Shown: positions 380-64,000, counted from the first letter of the stretch. The stretch is 64,000 nt of DNA from Guillardia theta CCMP2712 (GCF_000315625.1 NW_005434614.1:2402-66401); one strand, 5' to 3'. Notes: generated by a model not told the origin, from the sequence alone. Numbers and translations: made by a program.

Positions 380-2020
380 GGGGGTAGGGGTTATCTGGTA
401 CAGGGTGTATACTCCAATTGACGAGTGGAACTCAAGGGGTGGGGTCACATGTCATGATTCTTGGGGTAGGGTGTGTTGCGTCTCGGAGGGAAAAGTTTAC
501 TCCATCTTGAACGTTGAGTAAAACTTTGAGCTCTGGTCGCCAAATTGAAGCCGCCGCTGTAGTAAAATGACTCCGGGGAGGGCCTGCCAGCCTGTGAGCC
601 TGCGGCCTCGGACGGGCCAGCGGCCGGCCCGGCGGGACGGGCCGGGGGCCGCCGGGGGCCACCGGGGGGTGCGACCGTCCGACAGTCACACGTGGTTACT
701 ACCCGGCGTCGTACCCGGGGGCTTTACGCAAAGTTAAGTGTTAAAAATCAGTACGAGGACAATCAGGAGAGTCATGTCAAAGAGGCTTGACCCCGGGCCC
801 TGACACCGTCGCTGTCGCACTCAGTGGCCACCGACTGCGAACCAAACCAGGGGTCACTGGGGGCTGGGCCCCCGGAGCCTGCCCGCCCGGCGGCCCCGGG
901 CCCGCTACCGTCTCCCATAGTGTGACAGTTGCCGCTCAGTCACTCGGAGTGCCGCTTTTCCGTCGAGCCTCGGAGTGTGTGTGACCCGGCCCCCGCGACT
1001 CTTTCCGATTCGCCGCCGCCAGGGCCGGGCGCCTGCCGGGCCGCCCAGCCTGGCAGGTTTCCGGCGGATCGGACCGGCCGGCCGGCACCACTGCGGGCCG
1101 CCGCCGCACCGGCCGCGTGACACTGGTACTGACTGAGGACGGATTACGTCGGGGGTCCTCCTCAGGCTCATCAGACTCGAAAGGTCACATGCTGATGAAC
1201 ACCCCCCTCGTAAATACCACCCCCTCTTGCTCAATGCTTCATGTACCCCTACCCTTCAAAAAACAAAAATTGTGAATGCCACCCCCCGTATATCTTTATC
1301 ACCCGGTACCTTTCGATGACTTTGCAAGGTACATAACCAGGTCCATTCAGACGCTTACAGGGGTGCATCTCTTGCCTACCCAGGTTCCTCTAGTACCCAC
1401 CCTTTACTGTGTATCCCAACGACTATGAAGGACTACCCCATGTGATCCACCTCTAAAGCTCTCCACCCTCTTCAACATGCATCACCCCCCCCCCCCCCCC
1501 CCCCACCCCAAAGTGTGTTGGATACTGGGGGTTGGGTAGGGGTACGCATCAATAACCTTCAATGTGAAATTTTGAACGTGGGGCAGATGATTTGAAAAGT
1601 GTTTTTCTCTTTCGTCGAAGCTTGATACTGTATTAGATCAGCATTAGTACGAAGCATAGAAGATTTCCTGGGTAGAACGGGTCATTTGTAGCACAAATTA
1701 TTTTTTCAAGGTTTACCAGTACATTTCATAATCTCAAACATGACTGTTCAGCGGGGATGACAGTGGGACGGGTGCTTTAAGGCGGGGTAGGGTGGGGTCT
1801 ATTTCTCGATGGGGTTGGGGTGGGCATTTTCTACCGGACGGTGTGAGGGACAGCTTGTACCATAAACCAGGTGGGGTACTATATTTGGGGTGGGGGTGGC
1901 AATTCATTTCAAGGATAATGGGGTAGTCTCACATTCGTGCTAGAGCAAAATTAGGGAATGAGGGGTGGGTAGAAGATATCGAGGGGGTAGGGGTGAATCT
2001 TTGATCCGGTAGGTGAGGGT
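380..2020. promoter_or_regulatory. Divergent intergenic region: GGGGTA/TACCCC clusters, GGCC/CCGG-rich island (~570-1120) and conserved AT-rich core (723-808)
   Basis: G-rich 380-480, GC island, C-rich 1200-1510 ending in a ~20-nt poly-C, then G-rich 1520-2020. No credible ORF. Lies between a minus-strand and a plus-strand gene. Confidence 0.55.
723..808 (+). repeat. Dispersed conserved element, copy 1 (copy 2 at 63105-63168)
   Basis: Collinear shared blocks TTTAC.CAAAGTT, GTTAAAAATCAGTACGA (740-756), GGACAA, GAGGCTTGACCC (782-793), CCCTGACACCG (798-808). Confidence 0.85.
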
Positions 2021-2604
2021 GTGGACAGACGTGCGGGTTTCAGCGCGTATGGCGCAAGCCGAGTGACCGAGTCGGAGGGAACTGGAAGCTTGCAAGGTTG
2101 GGATATGAGAAAGATGATATGCGAGATGAAAGAAGTTGGCTATGTCTGTTGGATTGTGTTGTTTGTTCTCTTCTCTTGTATAATTGCCTCCTGTCGATCC
2201 TGTTTCCATTGCCCAGCCATCGTACTGACGTGTTCACGTTGTTCAACAAGTTTGGAGATGATACACTCTTCAACATGTATTATCAGCACCATGATTATCT
2301 TCTGTTTGTGTCTTTTACTCTCCATGGCGTCTTGTGAAACATGTTTTTTTGTCTGAAGTACTTTTGTCTTCTACTCAGGGCACTGTACATTTGGTGCTGG
2401 TAAGAAGCTACAAAACAGTCCGTTTCTCAAGAGCGTTGTTGTCGTGAAGAGCCTTTTCTACACGCACAGTTTTTTTGGATGCTAGAGGACTCTGAAGAAA
2501 CGTTGGATAGAGAACTTTCAATGCACTCGGTCGCTACAACGGTTGCCCAGGTATGTTACCACTGTAGATCCCGTTCGTGGGACGTCTGACGGAAATGCAG
2601 TCGA

Positions 2605-4257
2605 ATGGCTCGTCTCCAAGACAAATCCAATCGAATCCAATCAAAGAAGATGCTCACCTCGATGGATGGAGACAAATCAGGTGAACTTTTCTTTCTCTGC
2701 CGTCTTCGAGCATTGAGGCATGAATCCAGTGAAAAGTTGATCGACTTGGCGGTGGGTGGCGACGAGGATGTAATGAGATATGGAGACTTGATCGTGAACG
2801 AGAAAGCGATCAGGAGATTTCTTGCTGCGAACAAAGGCAATGTGGACAAGGCCTTGCACCAGTTTGTCAAGCACTTGAAATGGCGCGAAGAATATCAGCT
2901 GGACGCAATTGTCGAAGAGGACTTCTCGGACATGCTCGAGCTGAATGAAATCTACTGGGCAGGGAAGGATCTGGAGGGTGTTCCTACTCTCACCTGGCTC
3001 TTGCGGAAGCATGATGCCAAACGGCAAAGCGCTGACCGTTTCGTGAGATTCCTCGTCTTTCAAATCGAGCGCGGCTTGAGGGCCATGCCGGACTATCCGA
3101 ATGGGAGGTTCAACATAGCAGTGGATCTGTCGCACGTGGGATACAGCAACATGGATCATGAAATGTCCGTTAAGCTCCAGGCTGTGTTGACACAGAATTA
3201 CCCCAAAGTCAGGAAGGCCTTGTATGTCTTCCCTGTCAATTGGTTTGTTCAGCTTTTCTGGGACACGCTGTTGAAACCTATTCTTTCGACTCTTCAACCT
3301 GACATCGAGGATAAGATCTGCCCTCTGCGGGGAGACTACAAGGCAGAGCTTCTGAAACGCTTTGACATCAGTGAGATTGAAATCGCATTTGGTGGAGAAC
3401 TTGACGTCGAAGGTCGCAAAAATCCCAAGTTTGTGCAATACATTCCAAGGGCTTATTGCGTTGATGTGAAGCGAGAGAACGATGAGTTGGTCAACAGTCA
3501 GCCAATTGCTCCTGTGGTAGAGCAAGTCGGACAGACGAATCACAAGGAGCTTGAAGATAATTCAGAATCTGAGTACGACACACCAGACGCATCACCGGTA
3601 ATACAACCGTTAACTGCAGATGAAACGATTCCACCTATGGAAGAAAAGTACGAGGACAACAAGGGGAACTCTTTGCAGACAGAAGACAAGGAGCAGGAGA
3701 TGAAAAAATCCAACAGGGATGTCACTGAGGGCTCGAAGTTCAATCCCGTCGAAACTTCTCACAGGCAGAAACTTGTTGAACTGAACGACGAGACTCTCAG
3801 AGTCTTGCTGTGCAACGGCCACAAATACGTGGAGGGCAATGGCCACAAATACGTGGAGGGCAGCGGTGACGACAACCTTAATAATGATCAGCACACAACA
3901 TCCGCAGGGGAAGTTTCAGCGGAGCCCGAGCATGCTAGCCTGCAGGCTGAGGACGAAGGGGTTGATCGTGAACGGTCAGCGATCCACCTGGGAGCTCGCA
4001 GGGGATCCACTGAAGAGGCTGGATCCAGTGAGGGCAGAGATGGGGAACTGGATGGGAAGGAGGAGAAGCAAGTTTTGTTTGACCTGGGCATGGCATTGGC
4101 AGCAAGCACACAGCTACTGCCGTCACCTGTTGCTTCCCTCCCACACCCGACGGGGAAGAAGGGTTCGGAGGAGAACCATGCGGAAGACGACAACCCGTTG
4201 GAGTTCTTCATGTCGCAAGTAGAGGTGTTCCGATTATTGCAAGTCATCATGAGATGA
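2605..4257 (+). CDS. CRAL-TRIO/Sec14-like lipid-binding protein (core exon; further exons up- and downstream, to roughly 5000)
   Basis: RRFLAANKGNVDKA...HLKWR (CRAL-TRIO N), GKDLEGVP, AVDLSHVGYSNMD, QNYPKV..LYV, EIAFGG. A 49-nt intron at 2681-2729 probably changes the N-terminus relative to the ORF track. Confidence 0.88.
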   Translation: MARLQDKSNRIQSKKMLTSMDGDKSGELFFLCRLRALRHESSEKLIDLAVGGDEDVMRYGDLIVNEKAIRRFLAANKGNVDKALHQFVKHLKWREEYQLDAIVEEDFSDMLELNEIYWAGKDLEGVPTLTWLLRKHDAKRQSADRFVRFLVFQIERGLRAMPDYPNGRFNIAVDLSHVGYSNMDHEMSVKLQAVLTQNYPKVRKALYVFPVNWFVQLFWDTLLKPILSTLQPDIEDKICPLRGDYKAELLKRFDISEIEIAFGGELDVEGRKNPKFVQYIPRAYCVDVKRENDELVNSQPIAPVVEQVGQTNHKELEDNSESEYDTPDASPVIQPLTADETIPPMEEKYEDNKGNSLQTEDKEQEMKKSNRDVTEGSKFNPVETSHRQKLVELNDETLRVLLCNGHKYVEGNGHKYVEGSGDDNLNNDQHTTSAGEVSAEPEHASLQAEDEGVDRERSAIHLGARRGSTEEAGSSEGRDGELDGKEEKQVLFDLGMALAASTQLLPSPVASLPHPTGKKGSEENHAEDDNPLEFFMSQVEVFRLLQVIMR

Positions 4258-6000
4258 CGATCTATTCTCAAATCGACGACAAACGTGGCATCGTGTTTGC
4301 GGGCGCTCTTCTTGCAAGGCATCCAGGCAGTGTTTTATACATCAGACGTGACATTCTCACATATATGTGCTGAATTCAGTGAATCAAGTTTATATTCCCA
4401 CAAAGCGACACTCTGCCCACCTACTCGCGTTTCTTCCGCCTCCCTGCATGTTCGATATTGTTTGTCTTCATCCACAAGTCATCCCTGCTCAGATCTCGCA
4501 GGTGGTGCATCTGACTCTGGTGCTGCGTCTCCACCTGAAACGCCTCTGAAAAGATGTCGCGCTCAATCTCGTCCCTCCTCCTGAACTTCTCGACTAGCAA
4601 GAACATCCCAACCCCCTGCAGGTATGCTGTGAACGCAAAGTACACGTCAGGACTGACGGTGTGCGGAAGAGAGAGGGTTGACCGAGGAAGATGTCGAAGT
4701 GCGAATGTGTATGATCAGTGAAGAACTGATCTCTCATCAAGACGAACGGGATGTGCAGAGGAGAGAAGAAGCATGTGAAGGTGACGAGAGATGAAATCTG
4801 CCATCCAGCATGTCAGCACAGGTGGAGGACATGCAGGCGGGAGCCGGGAGCCGAGAGGGGTAATGAAAGTTTGGGAGGGAATGGTCACGTGTGGCAGACT
4901 CTTTGCTTGTCGCATCCCGTAAGCCTGGAAGCTGAAGGAGAGGAGGAGGTCAGGGCGGCGCAAGAGAACATCTCCATCGGAGCCTGACATGGTGGAGAGG
5001 AGAACATATGCTGAAGTCACGAGGACGAACAAGGAGAAACCTTTGCAGAGTTCCTGGTGCTGGACTCTCAGTGCATGAGGGAGAAGCGGGAGGAGGACGC
5101 ACCTCAGAGTGAGGAGCTTTCCATTTTCCCGTGTTGATCGCCATGAACAGCCAGAGGAACTTTCAGCATGAAAGTCATTCCCTTCCCTTCTCCTCGCCTC
5201 CTCCTTCCTCTTGCTCCCTCACTGAACCCCCTGGAAGCCTCATTTCTCCTCCAGTGTCTCTCGATTCAAAAATCTTCTCCTTCACCCGTTCCCCCCCTTC
5301 TCTCATTCCTTCTTCCCTCCTCAACTCCTTCCTCACTAGTCTCCTGGTCTTCTCTGCGTTTTCCAGCTTCCCGCTTCCTGTCCTCCCCTTTCCCCTCCCC
5401 ACTTCCTCCACTTCTCCTGTCGTCCCTCTTCTCCCTTCCTCTTCTCCCTTCCTCTTCCTCTTCCTCTTCCTCTTCCTCTTCCTCTTCCTCTTCCTCTCCT
5501 TGTTCTCACCGGCATGTACAGGATGCACATCAGCGCCTTCATCAGCGCCCATGCCCGACTTGTGCGCATTCCGTTGGTGACAGGGGAGCCCTGCGATGGG
5601 CTGTGTGGGCCTTTTCCATATAGTGAGCGACTTAAGAAATCGATTAGGATGAGGGGGGTAGTGTTGGGATTTCACTCAAGCTGAGAAACATGGCAGGGGT
5701 GATGCAGGAGGGAGGGGAGCGGGGAGGGGAGGGGGAGGAGAGGGAGGAGGAAGGGGAGGGGGCAGGGGAGCTGAAGAGGGGAGAAGGTGGTGGTGAGAGG
5801 AGGGAGGAGGGAGGGTGAGGAAGTGGGAGGAAGAGGGGAGGAGAGGGAAAGGGGCAGGGGAGGGGAGAGAGAGAGAGGGAGGCAGTAGGAGAGTAGATAG
5901 TAGAGAAATATATGTGGAGGGTTGGGGGTGGAGGGTGGAGGGGTAGGAAAGGGAGGGAGTGAGGTGTCTTAAATAATAAAAAGGAAAGGATTGTGCCTAA

Positions 6001-15251: not shown

Positions 15252-17640
15252 ATGGGCTTGCGGTACTGCGGCTGGCAATCTACTTCGATAGTGCTGCTCC
15301 TGTTTTGCTGGGGAGCTAGGGGAGAACACGACTCTTGTCGATTCTACCTGGAAGAAATGACTGGGAGAAAGTTTGGCCTTTGCCATTACGGGTTGAACGT
15401 GGAAGGGTCCGGGAGAGGAATCCGAATAGACTTCTTGGAAGACTCAAGACATCTCTTGTCCAAGACGACGATTGAGCATGCAGAGGTTCATTGCAGCATA
15501 GAGATGAAAGGGAACTCTTCCTTCCCTCATCATCAGCTCCCTGCACACTGGGTGTTGTCGTACCAGCCAGCACCCAGTACAACCTTGGAGGAGGTGTACA
15601 TCCCGGTGTACGTTGACTTGATGCACAAGAAAGAGTCTTGTGTGTCGGATGTTCACTTGGGCTACGATAAGATCTTGAGTACGTGGGTAGGAGATGCCAT
15701 GAAGGGATCAGAGCGTCATGGCAGAGCTCTGACCCTCTCTCCCCTTGGCCAGTTCGGAAGTCAGCCAGGTAGCAAGGAGTTTGAAGCTCATTGCGACCTG
15801 GAGGTGCTGCTGGGGAACGATGCTACAGGTGACCCGATGCCTCTGACGTGCTGGTTTGTGACTTGATCCCTTCCCGGCCCTCAGATGTTCTGCAGATCAA
15901 AGAGCAGGTGAGGGAGAGAGATGGAGATTGTCGATAGTGGCGAGGAGAGTGTTGATGGTAGAGGGAATTTAGTCGAGAGAACAGGGAGGGAGGGAGGGAG
16001 GGAGGGAGGGAGGGAGGGAGGGAGGGAGGGAGGGAGGGAGGGAGGGAGGGAGGGAGGGAGGGAGGGAGGGANNNNNNNNNNNNNNNNNNNNNNNNNNNNN
16101 NNNNNNNNNNNNNNNNNNNNNNNNNNNNNNNNNNNNNNNNNNNNNNNNNNNNNNNNNNNNNNNNNNNNNNNNNNNNNNNNNNNNNNNNNNNNNNNNNNNN
16201 NNNNNNNNNNNNNNNNNNNNNNNNNNNNNNNNNNNNNNNNNNNNNNNNNNNNNNNNNNNNNNNNNNNNNNNNNNNNNNNNNNNNNNNNNNNNNNNNNNNN
16301 NNNNNNNNNNNNNNNNNNNNNNNNNNNNNNNNNNNNNNNNNNNNNNNNNNNNNNNNNNNNNNNNNNNNNNNNNNNNNNNNNNNNNNNNNNNNNNNNNNNN
16401 NNNNNNNNNNNNNNNNNNNNNNNNNNNNNNNNNNNNNNNNNNNNNNNNNNNNNNNNNNNNNNNNNNNNNNNNNNNNNNNNNNNNNNNNNNNNNNNNNNNN
16501 NNNNNNNNNNNNNNNNNNNNNNNNNNNNNNNNNNNNNNNNNNNNNNNNNNNNNNNNNNNNNNNNNNNNNNNNNNNNNNNNNNNNNNNNNNNNNNNNNNNN
16601 NNNNNNNNNNNNNNNNNNNNNNNNNNNNNNNNNNNNNNNNNNNNNNNNNNNNNNNNNNNNNNNNNNNNNNNNNNNNNNNNNNNNNNNNNNNNNNNNNNNN
16701 NNNNNNNNNNNNNNNNNNNNNNNNNNNNNNNNNNNNNNNNNNNNNNNNNNNNNNNNNNNNNNNNNNNNNNNNNNNNNNNNNNNNNGATGATGATGATGTT
16801 GGTGGTGGAGATAGAGATGATGATGATGATGATGATGATAGAAGATGATGATGATGATGATGGAGATAGAGAAGAAGAAGATGATGATGATGGAGATGAT
16901 GATGATGACGATGGAATTGATGATGGAGATAATGATGATGGAATTGATGATGATGATGGAAATGATAGAGATGATGATGACGACGACGATGACGACGATG
17001 CTCTTAACAATTCATGATTCATGATTGCAGGATATTGTCCTTGGAATTTCTCATCCGTATCTTGCCTTTGTCCTGCGATCCCTCTCCTCGTCCTCGACCT
17101 CCTCCTCCTCCTCGACCTCCTCCTTGTCCTCGATATCCATGGAAGGAGAAGACACCAACGGCAATTGGTTGTCGTCATGTGAGATTTTTCAATCCTGGAG
17201 CTTCACGGGCAGCGAGGGTGAGAGGAAGAGCATAAGAAGGCGGAAAACTGCCGGGCAAACATGCGCGAGGTGAAAGCAAAAACGTTTCTTGCACATCCCT
17301 GCTGCAGCTTTTATCGCCTTCTTTCGTGTCTGGACCACTTCTACACGTGTTCTTCTTCTCTTCTTCCTGTCCTCCACTTCTTTACTTTATCTACACTTCT
17401 TTACTTCAACCTCACTTGTTTGCCTCAACTTCACTTCATCCTCGTTTCTTCACTTGATGTTGTTCTTGACTTTCGACCAATAGCAAGAGACTGTTTGTGG
17501 GCAATCACAACTTCGCGCAAGTTGTAGCAACAAGCTCACAAAACATCTCATGCGATAACTACAAGGAGCGATTCCTTTGCCGCGAGAGGCAGGACGGAAG
17601 AAAGGAAAATATCTACGACCTTCAGGTCCGAGAGGAGAGG
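15252..17640 (+). CDS. Hypothetical secreted protein, multi-exon, spans the N-gap; 3' end uncertain
   Basis: Signal-peptide-like MGLRYCGWQSTSIVLLLFCWGARG, ~200 codons of complex sequence, further AG/GT-bounded exons at ~17030-17270. Confidence 0.5.
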
Positions 17641-58913: not shown

Positions 58914-60528
58914 CAAGTGGTGGTGATAGTGGTGGTCGTGATAATGGCGGTGGTGGAGGAGGAGATTTCTCACTAGGTTTCCACTCCTGTCGAGTCTGAA
59001 CATAATGCCGCAACTGACGCCGCTCTCACCGCCTGCTCCCTCCTCAAGGCACCTGCAGCACCAGCAGCGTCATGCTACAGGAACGTCCCTCCTTGATCCT
59101 TCATCTCTCACTCGTCAAGGAGGAAGGACGTCTCCGATCCCTCCAGCGCCAGCGCCTCCATCATCTCCTCCGTCACGTCCTCGTCCTCAACCCCCGTCGC
59201 TGACACCGAGAAGGCGTTCCGGAAGATGCCCCGCACGTTGGGCTTCGATCCCAGCAGGAAGTTCTTGAGAGCTTGTCGCTTCCACCCTCTCACCCTCCCC
59301 TTCTCCTTCCCGCTCACCTGAAGCCCCCCCCTGCCCGCCTCCTCCGCCTGCCGATGCCCACTGGCGTGCCGCACCTGCTGCTTCTCCTCCTCCTTCTCCT
59401 CCCGATGGTGCACTCTTGTCTCGTCCATCGTCCTCCTCTCGATCGACCGTAGGTCGTCATGGTTCTTGCAGCAGCTGACTTCTCCCGGGATCCCCCATGG
59501 CGGGTTGGCAGGGTCGACCTGCGCGATCGCCATGGAGATCCTCTCAACCCACTTCTCGGCCTCTGCGAGGGAGGACGACTGCATGTACCAGGAGGCGCTC
59601 TCCCTCCCCTCCCCCTCCACCACCTGCAGCACATGATTCTCGGCATCTACCAGCGCTACCCTCGACTTGGGTTGCAGCAGGATTTGACCCCTGGGGAGCT
59701 TCACGCCTTCGGAGATCTTGAAGTAGGACAGGATCCCGTACTGCAGGAGGAACTTCCTCCGTACCCACTTCTTCCTCCACTTGTCCCCCCTCTTGGTCAA
59801 GAACCCTTCGTGCCTGATCGTCGGCGCATGCTCCCTTCCCCTCCCCACCTCCTCCCCCGATGCGCTCGCTGTCATCCATTCGTGGATCCGTTCTGCATTC
59901 TTGTAGAGCGCATCTTCGCCGGCACTCAACCTCTCATCCTCTTCCTCCTCTGCTTCATCTTCCTGCCCCTCCTGCCCCTTCTGTTCCTCCTGCTGTCCCT
60001 CCTGCTGTCCCTCCTGCTGTCCCTCCTGCTGTCCCTCCTGCTGTCCCTCCTGCTGTCCCTCCTGCTGTCCCTCCTCCTGCCCCTCCTCCTGCCCCTCCTC
60101 CTGCCCCTCCTGCCCCTCCTCTCCCTCCTGAGCTCTCGAGGCTACCGGTTCCTGCCCCTGTACACCTTCCACTTGCCCTGCTTCAACTGCTGCATCCTCC
60201 TCCCATCTCCCTTCCTCTCCCTCGTTCTCTCCTTCATGCTCCCTCTGCTCGCCCTCCCCGCCGCCATCGCCACCTCCCCCGCCCCCTCCACCTCCTTGGG
60301 CATTGCGCCTCTTCCCCTTTTTCCCCTGCGACTCTTTAGGGTGCTGCCCCCCGAAGCGTCCCCTGCCGTCCCCGTCCCCTGCCGCCGATGCGCTGCTATG
60401 ACGAATCCGCTGACTGCTCTGACTTTCTCCCCCGTCCTCCCCCTCCTCTCCACCACCTGGAAGTACTCCATCGCACCTCCTCCTCACTCCCTCCATCACC
60501 CTTTCTCCTCAATCGGATCCCTGGGCAT
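58310..60528 (-). CDS. PH-domain protein with EGQQ repeat linker; 3' end approximate
   Basis: HEGFLTKRGDKWRKKWVRRKFLLQYGILSYFK...PRGQILL...SSSLAEAEKWVERI. Confidence 0.85.
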
Positions 60529-60837: not shown

Positions 60838-62879
60838 TCATCGTCTGTAGTAGTAACCGTATCCTTGTCCGTGCGCCCCCGGGGCTCCTGGGGATCCTGG
60901 CGACCCGTGCGCCCCCTGTCCGGTAGTGAGCCACGAGCATCAGCAAGGTCATCGCGCTTACGTTCGATCCTGGTGCTCCCGACACACCAGGGGCTCCCGG
61001 CGCGCCATGCGCTCCAGGTACTCCTCCCTGCCGTCATGTCAGCGCCGGCCACCGGGTTGCGCCCGACTGTACTCACCGCTCCGTTGAGCCCGGGGGCTCC
61101 TTGCGTTCCTGGGGCTCCTGCAGAGAGAGGTCAAGAGAGGAGGAGGTGTGAGGAGCTCAGAGTCCTCACCAGCCGGGCCGGGCAGACCGTTGAGCCCAGC
61201 TGGGCCCGGCTGCCCGGGGATTCCTGGAGCGCCCATGGCCCCCTGAGGTCCAGCGATGCCGGGAAGACCGTGAGGTCCCATCGGGCCCACTGGGCCTGGC
61301 ACGCCGTTCTCTCCTCGCGGTCCCTCCTGCCCTGGTGGGCCGGGGGGTCCTGGGGCTCCGGGCTGACCAGCCGGTCCAGACTGACCCGGAGGACCCTGCG
61401 GGCCCGTTGCTCCAGTCGCCCCGGGGCTCCCATCCTCTCCCGCAGGTCCGACTGGCCCACTAGGCCCTGGCGCTCCCATGGGTCCAGGAAGTCCAGGTGC
61501 CCCAGGGATCGAGTGTCCTGTCGCTCCACGGGGGCCACGAATTCCCGGGTCTCCCCGAGGCCCGACGGCTCCTGGTGGGCCGGTGAGACCTGGTGGTCCC
61601 TGCAGACCCATCGGGCCTGGCTTCCCTCTGTAGCCTCGCGGGCCCTCCGGTCCCGGGATCCCATCCCGACCTGCCAGTCCTGGAGGTCCTTGGGGTCCCA
61701 TGGGTCCCATGGGTCCAGTTCTTCCTGGACTTCCCGCCACGCCCTGTGCATCTCCGTGTGAGGTGAAGGAGGAGAAGGAGGAGAAAGAAAAGGAGAATGG
61801 TCGTCACCTGCAACCCGGGCGGTCCCATCTTGCCTGTAATGGTGTCAAGTCATGGCCTGAAACACTGGGCAAGGGCGCTACTGCTCACCTGCTATTCCTG
61901 CTGGTCCCATGGGTCCTGGCACACCACGAGGTCCAGGAGGAGGCTGCTCCCGGCTCAGCCTCTCGAGCTCTCTTCGCAATCGATCATATCTATCGCACAA
62001 CCTCAGGCTCACAGAAAGGTTGAACAACAAGGGAAACCGTTGCTTCAGTTGCGAGTTGCGCTTCTCCAGACCTTCGATCTCGTCTTGCTGCTCGCTGCGG
62101 ATGGAGTGAAACTCCTTCTCCTCCAGCGCTTGCCTGGTTTCACTGTTTGATTGTTCAGACTCGCAAACGGGGCTTCCAGGAAAGCAAACTCACGTCAGCT
62201 GAGCAATCTGTGACAACCTGTCGAACTCCTCCTTGACCGTAGGGATGATTTGGGCTTGTGTCACTGTAACTCGAGGAGCTGCGCCTCTGTGCACTGTAAC
62301 AGCGCCCAGTGGTCCTCCCTGTACGACGATACTCCCAGAAGCCTTCGAAGGCACAACATCAGCAGCTTCGTCGCTTACATCGGCTAGGGATTGCGAGAAG
62401 TCATGGTTCACAAAGTGCCCTGTCAGGGTCACGCCTGAACTAAGAAGAGAGGAGTTGTGCGAAATGGCGGTCTGCGAAGAAGGCAAATCAGTGAAACGAA
62501 AGCCAAGGGGATTCAATAGACGGAAAGCAACATGGCGAACAAGTGTCTTTGGCAACAAGAAACCCACTGAAACATGATTGATTGAAACTAGCTTTCTCGA
62601 TTATTGTAACATCTACACTATCACAATCTCTTCATGTCTTCCAGCAGTTGGCCACAAAACTTCTCGCTGGTGTATGCCACACCCAACACCTCAGCCTTAT
62701 TTCCCATCTTCGTTTCCACTCCTCCCTCACCCCAATCCTTTGATCATACCATCACCAACTTCTCTCTGCCTTCTCCATACTCCATTTATTCCTCCTCCAT
62801 TTTCCTCCATAGTCACCTGCAGAGCCGCCATGATCAGCAACAAGGCGCTTCCTCCCGCCAGCCATCGCACAGGCTCCAT
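60838..62879 (-). CDS. Secreted collagen-like (Gly-X-Y) protein with preceding coiled coil
   Basis: First exon [21 protein letters not shown]|GT; coiled coil ([19 protein letters not shown]); more than 60 Gly-X-Y triplets in 61160-61740; ends [16 protein letters not shown]. Confidence 0.9.
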
Positions 62880-62889
62880 GGCGGCTCTT

Positions 62890-63750
62890 CGCACAGACCC
62901 CACCCCAACATATTCCACAGAAAAATCTAGAAAAGGGTGGGTAGGTGTCCTGTTCTAATACTACCCCGTCAGAACATATGGTGTCAGGGGGTACTGGTCA
63001 GCCCGGGCTGTGCCTCTGGTGACGGCGAGTGCCAGTGCGGCGCAGCCGCCGCCGGGGGCCGGGCCGCCCGGCCCGGCCAGTCACTGATTACTAGTACCAT
63101 ACCTTTTACTCAAAGTTTAGTTAAAAATCAGTACGAAGGACAACTCGGGAGGCTTGACCCTGACACCGCGGCCATGCCGCCGGGCGCCGGCACTGCTCAG
63201 CCTGGCAGTGATGGCCGGCGGGCGGCCCCGGACCGTGCGGGCCCGGCGGGCCGCCGCCGGCGGCCCGGGCCCGGCGGCCGCGCGCAGCGGCCGGGCTGAC
63301 CCCGGTCGGACCGTGAAAGTTACTGAAGGGACACCCCTACCCCAATAGATCCAGTTAGAAGTACCCCACCCTGTCTGTTCCTTCCTTCTCCGAGTCGGCC
63401 CCCCGTCTGCCACTGGCTTTACTACCCCCTCCTAATTGAACTGACCCTGTGATCTATCACCCATTTGCTGCGGAAGGATGGGGTACTATGAATACCCCAC
63501 CCTATAAACAGAGGATAACATCTGGACCCACCTTGCCTGTATCAAGCTATAAAATACCTTTTCTCCTCCCTCCACCCCTCCTTTCGAACAAATTTTCGCG
63601 AAAGGGAAAGCTGCCCACCCCTACCTACTCAGTAGTACCCCTGTATTCCCACGTGTGCGAGAACCCCACGCAACATACGCCAGGTACCCGTACCCTTGAC
63701 CTGATCCTCTACCACCGGTCAAAATTCAAGGGGAAATAACCCCTGGTCCC
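62890..63750. promoter_or_regulatory. Intergenic region with GC island (63000-63310), conserved core and TACCCC tract
   Basis: Same architecture as 380-2020, upstream of the collagen-like gene. Confidence 0.55.
63105..63168 (+). repeat. Dispersed conserved element, copy 2
   Basis: GTTAAAAATCAGTACGA 63120-63136, GAGGCTTGACCC 63149-63160, CCCTGACACCG 63158-63168. Confidence 0.85.
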
Positions 63751-64000
63751 TCCTCCTTCTATGCCGCCGGCGCCGCCTTTTGGAACAGCGGCATGAGCAC
63801 TGATTGAAAGGACCGCCCCCTTACCCCCTTACTTCCTTTATCTCCCTTTTCATCTTCCTCCAGTTTCTATCTTAACGCGTTTCTCCTTGTGCCATCCCTT
63901 CCTGCTGGGGTCTGTGGATTTCTTGAACATTTTCAAGGATCTCCTGAGGCACGGCAAAACTCAATTTTTGGGAAGTTTGCCAGCCGTATTGCTCCTTCCA

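Follow-up and report, generated by a model that had tools for sequence, protein, structure and literature searches.

The AT-rich core common to two GC islands of Guillardia theta is the best-preserved part of a dispersed nuclear repeat and most likely a mobile-element remnant

Two loci at opposite ends of a 64,000-nt stretch of Guillardia theta CCMP2712 DNA (the whole stretch analysed, in the following called the window) each carry a short AT-rich core between GC-rich arms, which a sequence-only reading had singled out as a conserved functional element, proposing as candidates a small non-coding RNA (ncRNA) gene, a protein-binding core or the end of a decayed transposon. The core is the best-preserved part, of about 34-50 nt, of a dispersed nuclear repeat present in a few thousand copies, and it is neither a gene nor a site specific to these two loci. 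The surrounding GGCC/CCGG arms are a feature separate from the core. Most likely, the repeat is an ordinary mobile-element remnant with an apparent link to the GC islands. Among the candidates, the end of a decayed transposon comes nearest to the data, as the core is dispersed at high copy number and has one sharp end. It behaves as a retroelement tail, running in one direction and forming direct tandems, and not as a terminal inverted repeat. On balance we favour the reading that the repeat consists of 5'-truncated, very short copies of the 3'-terminal tail of a putative retrotransposon in minus-strand sense. Neither strand of the core occurs in the papers searched, and the search gave no paper dealing with G. 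theta LINEs or with this repeat, which is undescribed in the literature and belongs to a known kind of element.

The two window copies, in the following copy 1 (left) and copy 2 (right), have an exact 17-mer in common (740-756 and 63120-63136, both on the plus strand). A search for this 17-mer allowing up to three mismatches gave two matches compared with 0.05 expected, and two matches were not reached in any of 100 shuffles. Further exact blocks present in both copies are GAGGCTTGACCC (782-793 and 63149-63160) and CCCTGACACCG (798-808 and 63158-63168), and TTTAC.CAAAGTT and GGACAA are likewise common to both, all of these blocks being collinear. Hence, the claim that the two loci share collinear blocks including the 17-mer is borne out far above chance. 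Its proposed extent needs correction, however: the blocks are present, but the common stretch begins about 40 nt further left with AGTCAC..TTACTA..GTACC. A gap-tolerant alignment of 684-812 with 63079-63172 shows 92% identity in ungapped columns, and 43 of its 133 columns are gapped, in line with the earlier statement that the copies differ mainly by indels. Accordingly, the two copies are near to each other in substitutions and distant by indels. Among the six insertions that the aligned stretch has in copy 1 only, three consist purely of G/C and are 6-7 nt long (CCCGGC, CGGGGG and CCCCGGG). They look as though the island-building process had entered the repeat copy. In the inward extension of copy 2, an extra A is present and about 14 nt are missing compared with copy 1 and the family consensus. 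In the inferred minus-strand sense, the copy 2 core runs into an A-rich 3' terminus, ...GAGTAAAAGG, ending at 63103. Besides, a short stub of the A-rich terminus lies about 200 nt to the left of copy 1 in the opposite orientation, as deduced from a consensus 16-mer with two mismatches and from inverted 10-mers at 514-523 and 521-530. The coordinates of the copies, of the neighbouring motifs and of the arms are compiled in the table.

Features of the two loci; positions are counted from the first letter of the window.
Feature	Position	Strand	Basis
Copy 2, core of about 34 nt, high-copy	63103-63136	-	Contig depth, loose ends
Copy 2, inward extension: GGACAA, GAGGCTTGACCC, CCCTGACACCG	63137-63168	-	Alignment, contigs
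Copy 1, core; 2 substitutions and a 2-nt insertion versus family consensus	723-757	-	Alignment
Copy 1, inward extension: GGACAATCAGGAGA, then GAGGCTTGACC, 7-nt pure-G/C insertion, CTGACACCG	758-808	-	
Third copy, 17-18-nt stub of the A-rich terminus (..CTTGAACGTTGAGTAAAA)	506-523	+	Sliding 16-mers of consensus
TAGTAA-N-TGACT motif, 37 nt past stub terminus, left edge of island 1	560-572	+	
Same motif, reading AGTCAC..TTACTA on the plus strand, 21 nt past copy 1 terminus	684-701	-	
TAGTAA..TGACT motif, about 9-10 nt past copy 2 terminus	63079-63093	-	
Island 1, left GC-rich arm; GC up to 0.87, CpG o/e 0.97	573-683	.	
Island 1, right GC-rich arm; ends in CGTGACACTGGTACTGA (1116-1132)	809-1132	.	
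Island 2, left GC-rich arm; 19-nt odd palindrome centred at 63065	62990-63078	.	
Island 2, right GC-rich arm; GC up to 0.93; CAGCCTGGCAG (63198-63208); ends in CGTGAAAGTTACTGA (63312-63326)	63169-63326	.	

For the genome-wide abundance, Logan contigs of two DNA runs (X1 and X2), an RNA contig set (X6) and one raw RNA-seq run were mapped to 61900-64000 (2,101 letters) at 80% likeness. In X1, one contig spans the whole mapped stretch at a depth of 57. The core at 63103-63136 is covered by 388 contigs in X1 and 220 contigs in X2, and the summed depth at 63118 reaches 232,757 versus the single-copy value of 57 in X1, and 12,820 versus about 4.2-4.9 in X2. Relative to single-copy depth, this is an excess of about 4,000-fold (X1) and about 2,600- to 3,000-fold (X2), corresponding to about 2,600-4,000 copy-equivalents, a figure that represents summed unitig depth and not a true copy number and that may be inflated up to about twofold by overlapping unitigs. 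The possibility raised beforehand that only two copies exist genome-wide is clearly at odds with these data, as hundreds of contigs carry the core. The T at position 63118 is private to copy 2; an A is found instead in 229,530 of the total depth of 232,757 (X1).

The contigs also define the edges and the direction of the repeat. Loose ends cluster sharply before 63102-63105, where the consensus of the flanks is random-looking (agreement 0.36-0.55), and similarity among copies extends from this edge inward only. At the opposite edge, loose ends accumulate at 63136-63138, in part because copy 2 has its private extra A there. The consensus behind these loose ends starts with GGACAATCAGGAGA, the same as copy 1 at 758-771, and runs for 14 nt. 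Another genomic copy matches 63119-63166 with one substitution and ten gap letters, and at least three copies share an inner boundary near 63166-63168. A few contigs contain direct tandem joints leading from 63136 back to 63103 ("goes back 34") with spacers of 4-38 nt, and no strand-changing joints are listed among hundreds of contigs. Likewise, no inverted partner of the 17-mer was found in the window with up to three mismatches. The window copies of 17, 66 and 86 nt have the A-rich terminus in common and differ in their other ends. As inner ends recur at 63136-63138 and about 63166-63168, the lengths are not random.

High copy number, one sharp A-rich end, inward-only similarity, a nested set of three window copies, direct tandems and the lack of inverted pairs together fit copies of a retrotransposon tail. 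The parent proposed is a non-LTR (LINE-type) retrotransposon whose extreme 3' tail, in minus-strand sense, would end in ...CTTTGAGTAAAA. Where the target DNA is nicked or broken, reverse transcription would start from this tail and would usually abort within a few dozen bases, leaving stubs of 17 to about 90 nt with one end in common. These features resemble the 5'-truncated, "dead-on-arrival" LINE copies arising from target-primed reverse transcription, with many dispersed copies, one A-rich sharp end and inward-only similarity, and the likeness extends to head-to-tail tandems, the absence of an inverted partner and the lack of function at individual loci. In contrast to LINE tails, the G. 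theta copies are very short and of narrow size (mostly about 35-50 nt; 17-86 nt in the window), show no target-site duplications, reside in palindrome-built GC islands and are known here from the putative tail alone.

Several observations do not sit easily with tail copies of the simplest kind. Both ends of the 34-mer recur and the tandem joints restart exactly at 63103, which argues against simple truncation, and the narrow length range of about 35-50 nt argues against random 5' truncation. Moreover, all three window copies have TAGTAA..TGACT beyond the supposed 3' end, indicating either site-specific insertion or a unit larger than the tail. Target-site duplications were searched for without a convincing result, the best direct repeats being GC-rich words of 8-10 nt with a mismatch that do not abut the ends, although the old, indel-rich copies weaken this test. 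Site-specific insertion, 3' read-through or a larger unit would fit the lack of such duplications, the recurring inner boundaries and the motif past the 3' end. A reverse-transcriptase motif was not found in the six-frame translation of the window. Yeast Ty1 cDNA and mammalian L1 provide established cases of retroelement cDNA being captured at DNA breaks or of LINEs inserting independently of their endonuclease. An origin of this type would explain the tiny fragments, the missing target-site duplications and the clustering at break-prone palindromic DNA. However, such events are rare in known systems and often lack the 3' end of the element, whereas in G. theta the 3' end is constant and copies number in the thousands.

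The arms surrounding the cores stand out in the window. Within the 64 kb, 100-nt windows with a GC content of at least 0.80 occur at the two loci only, the arms having GC values of 0.80-0.93 and a CpG observed/expected ratio of about 1 versus 0.67 for the window. Odd-length, C/G-centred palindromes are enriched in three of the four arms (10, 6 and 8 versus 2.7, 0.9 and 2.6 expected from dinucleotide shuffles), with the 10 palindromes of 809-1132 comparing with 2.7 ± 1.7 in shuffles. No such enrichment was found in the cores or in a GC-rich collagen-like coding control (61100-61500). The AT core differs from the GC islands in being free of the odd palindromes that build the arms. Out of 63 palindromes in the window, 23 fall in the islands at 573-1132 and 62990-63326, which are its only two palindrome clusters. 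Both islands carry the core, oriented alike, with GGGGTA tracts to its left and TACCCC tracts to its right. The earlier description of both loci as bounded by TACCCC consequently holds for the right side of both islands, but on the left the tracts are of the GGGGTA type. Similarly, the statement that the arms do not align with each other fails for the right arms, since local alignment of 1023-1106 with 63178-63259 scores 51 versus 27 ± 3.8 in 300 dinucleotide shuffles (z 6.2). These segments are homologous, and 809-1022 (about 215 nt) is extra in the right arm of island 1 compared with copy 2. RNA contigs (X6) do not cover 62894-63035 or 63178-63745, corresponding to the arms of island 2. Taken together, the arms are GC- and CpG-rich, palindrome-enriched, untranscribed islands of 220-570 nt near a gene start, with RNA contigs checked on island 2. 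A search of the literature gave no description of such palindrome-built islands in G. theta.

The TAGTAA-N2-7-TGACT motif occurs three times in the 64 kb, each time beyond an element terminus and in one relative orientation. The right end of each island reads CGTGA-N-GKTACTGA (1116-1132 and 63312-63326), a motif confined to the islands. For TAGTAA..TGACT and CGTGA..GKTACTGA, candidate roles are a target site, an extension of the element at its 3' end, or marks of the island ends. With respect to the relation between repeat and islands, either the stubs would land preferentially in islands, or islands would expand by short G/C insertions that surround the stubs and enter them. That a repeat stub serves as the landing mark or seed of palindrome-built GC islands appears rather unlikely. 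In such a case, aborted reverse transcription at a fixed target next to TAGTAA..TGACT, or repair of the resulting break, would trigger local copying in reverse, and by this process short G/C palindromes would continue to accumulate in and around the stub.

An alternative that treats core and arms as one unit, which we consider unlikely, takes each whole island, consisting of motif, core, arm and end motif (248 nt for copy 2 and 449 nt for copy 1), as an old element or functional module, with the AT core as a selectively kept candidate protein-binding site (origin, boundary or promoter-organising) and with arms changing fast via G/C insertions. Collinearity indeed continues past the core (AGTCAC..TTACTA, GTACC, core, GAGGCTTGACC, CTGACACCG, CAGCCTGGCAG, CGTGA..GKTACTGA), aligned blocks keep their high identity despite heavy indels, and both palindrome islands of the window hold the core in the same orientation relative to GGGGTA/TACCCC, untranscribed and before a gene start. 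However, most genomic copies match copy 2 over about 34-50 nt only, with random-looking flanks of which some are not GC-rich, and some copies lie within RNA contigs. A near-invariant 34-nt sequence that occurs a few thousand times, in part as tandem duplicates, would be less usual for a binding site than for a mobile element, and no copy was found in the 8-kb contig set of a related cryptophyte or in metagenome, genome and viral collections, the latter evidently being without this alga. Highly improbable are readings in which the core forms the terminal inverted repeat of a DNA transposon or MITE, or in which the GC arms serve as the inverted repeats of a foldback element. The arms do contain mutually complementary stretches, on both strands the fold of island 2 is better than that of shuffles (z -3.7 and -3.9), and the stub at 506-523 is inverted relative to copy 1. 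Nevertheless, the outer end of this stub points towards the outer end of copy 1, an arrangement that does not suit a single element, and neither copy has an inverted core partner on its inner side, in line with the joints in hundreds of contigs being direct throughout, without change of strand. At 80% likeness, the arms match only about ten loci and do not form a repeat family, and folding of island 1 is not better than in shuffles (z -0.5 and -1.9). The fold of island 2 results from strand-symmetric GC palindromes and, hence, is not evidence for an RNA either. A coding reading of the minus strand across the GC arms was rejected, as open frames are expected from 90% GC alone. The idea of a Fanzor/omega-RNA was dropped, since about 34 nt are conserved across copies and a conserved long scaffold is missing; for GtFz1, a TTAAN motif has been described (PMC10432273).

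The remaining alternatives assign the core to an RNA. An ncRNA gene family or a spliced-leader (SL) RNA gene would have either a plus-strand exon ending in ...AAAAATCA directly before GUACGA or an Sm-like site on the minus strand, and we regard it as extremely improbable. The GT following ..ATCA on the plus strand, GAUUUUUAA on the minus strand and a copy number as high as that of SL RNA genes would suit it. The small ncRNA gene suggested by the sequence-only reading is nevertheless not supported, as no Rfam match, no fold signal and no RNA from the locus were obtained. Searching the whole window against Rfam at gathering score gave no relevant match, and four short slices (including 141-161-nt ones) searched at E ≤ 10 did not match any snRNA or SL family, returning only chance-level E values of 0.58-9.9 and nothing at all for the 141-nt slice. 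Folding of the core was indistinguishable from shuffles on both strands (z +0.4 to +0.8). RNA covering the core carries the A variant at 63118 throughout and therefore derives from other copies. The raw RNA-seq run was sampled thinly, with the neighbouring gene also being almost without reads. The SL RNA with a donor between CA and GTACG likewise finds no support: in the RNA contigs, neither loose ends nor a junction occur at the proposed CA/GT position (63130/63131), and the core is preceded and followed by unlike sequence, loose ends lying before 63101-63102 as well as at 63136-63138. Over the core, the RNA contigs sum to a depth of 3,210, only about twice that of one neighbouring gene (1,434), whereas a general leader would require orders of magnitude more. 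Moreover, the flanks are unconserved, unlike the introns and promoters of SL RNA genes. Relict spliced-leader sequences occur in dinoflagellate genomes as short, high-copy and at times tandem tags before genes, a pattern similar to that of the G. theta core, which in contrast lacks SL junctions and 5'-end enrichment in RNA. SL trans-splicing is not known from cryptophytes. Also very unlikely is a repeat derived from a U5-like snRNA or another abundant small RNA, consisting of partial retro-pseudogenes or a SINE-like body on the plus strand. The plus strand reads CCUUUUACUCAAAG ... GGAGAG ... GAGGCUUGACCC (63102-63160 and 722-793), an arrangement that parallels loop 1 followed by the stem's 3' strand in metazoan U5 snRNA. 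Besides this presumed resemblance to the U5 loop 1 region, the core of copy 2 can form a long imperfect hairpin with the motif in its loop. However, the Rfam U5 model does not match at E ≤ 10, even on the 141-161-nt slices, and Sm site and 3' hairpin are both absent. The sharp edge of the family would fall at the loop and not at an RNA end, similarity fades toward the would-be RNA 3' end, opposite to retro-copying from a 3' end, and the likeness of copy 2 is partly due to a deletion private to this copy.

That both copies lie upstream of a minus-strand gene can be confirmed for copy 2, the left neighbour of copy 1 being located outside the window. The gene left of copy 2 starts with an ATG at 62879-62877 and a signal-peptide-like first exon. 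Its exons show an RNA depth above 1,000 (X6), and its introns at 61990-62037, 62143-62193 and 62472-62816 (48, 51 and 345 nt) are confirmed by RNA. A 92-nt RNA contig (X6 record 20) fits the genome over 62817-62878 only, with about 30 unlike letters at the start codon and no AG acceptor. These letters could stem from an upstream 5'-UTR exon, a chimeric contig or another source. Further on, a collagen-like ORF of GPP repeats is found at 61039-61740 (minus strand). On the other side of island 2, RNA contigs are present at 63748-64000, where the minus strand, as judged by eye, appears to read ..EILENVQEIHRPQQEGMAQGETR with a stop near 63873. If so, island 2 is flanked on this side by the 3' end of a minus-strand gene and on the other by the start of the following one. 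Elsewhere in the window, low-complexity CT-rich/GA-rich and codon-repeat tracts occur at 130-240, 5400-5560 and 59900-60100 (CCTCCT.., (CTT)n and (GAAGGACAA)n-type), and gaps of N are present at about 16,100-16,800 and, shorter, near 5,900.

Sequence collections were scanned with a 25-mer of the consensus and a gapped 21-base pattern. Metagenome contigs gave zero and then two matches, the latter being chance matches in prokaryotes, genome contigs gave three chance matches in prokaryotic MAGs, and viral contigs gave none, with these collections evidently being without this alga. The window also contains a CRAL-TRIO ORF (2605-4257), which has no database entry in this exact form and whose database twin is present on a 2.4-kb transcript contig only. 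On 8-kb ENA metagenome contigs from a related cryptophyte, which carry a 58%-identical relative, the core was not found apart from a 13-nt chance match, and the GC-rich stretch on these contigs shows no enrichment of palindromes.

The conserved core in diverged GC arms is, hence, most likely a mobile-element remnant with thousands of copies and not a new RNA gene, origin or spliced leader, and annotators of cryptophyte genomes should mask the repeat. Since both islands of the window hold the core and copy 1 has received pure-G/C insertions, the stubs represent dated, alignable markers of island growth. They may also reveal whether a retroelement targets the islands. If the stubs indeed acted as seeds of the islands, a retroelement tail would organise thousands of promoter-side islands in G. 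theta.
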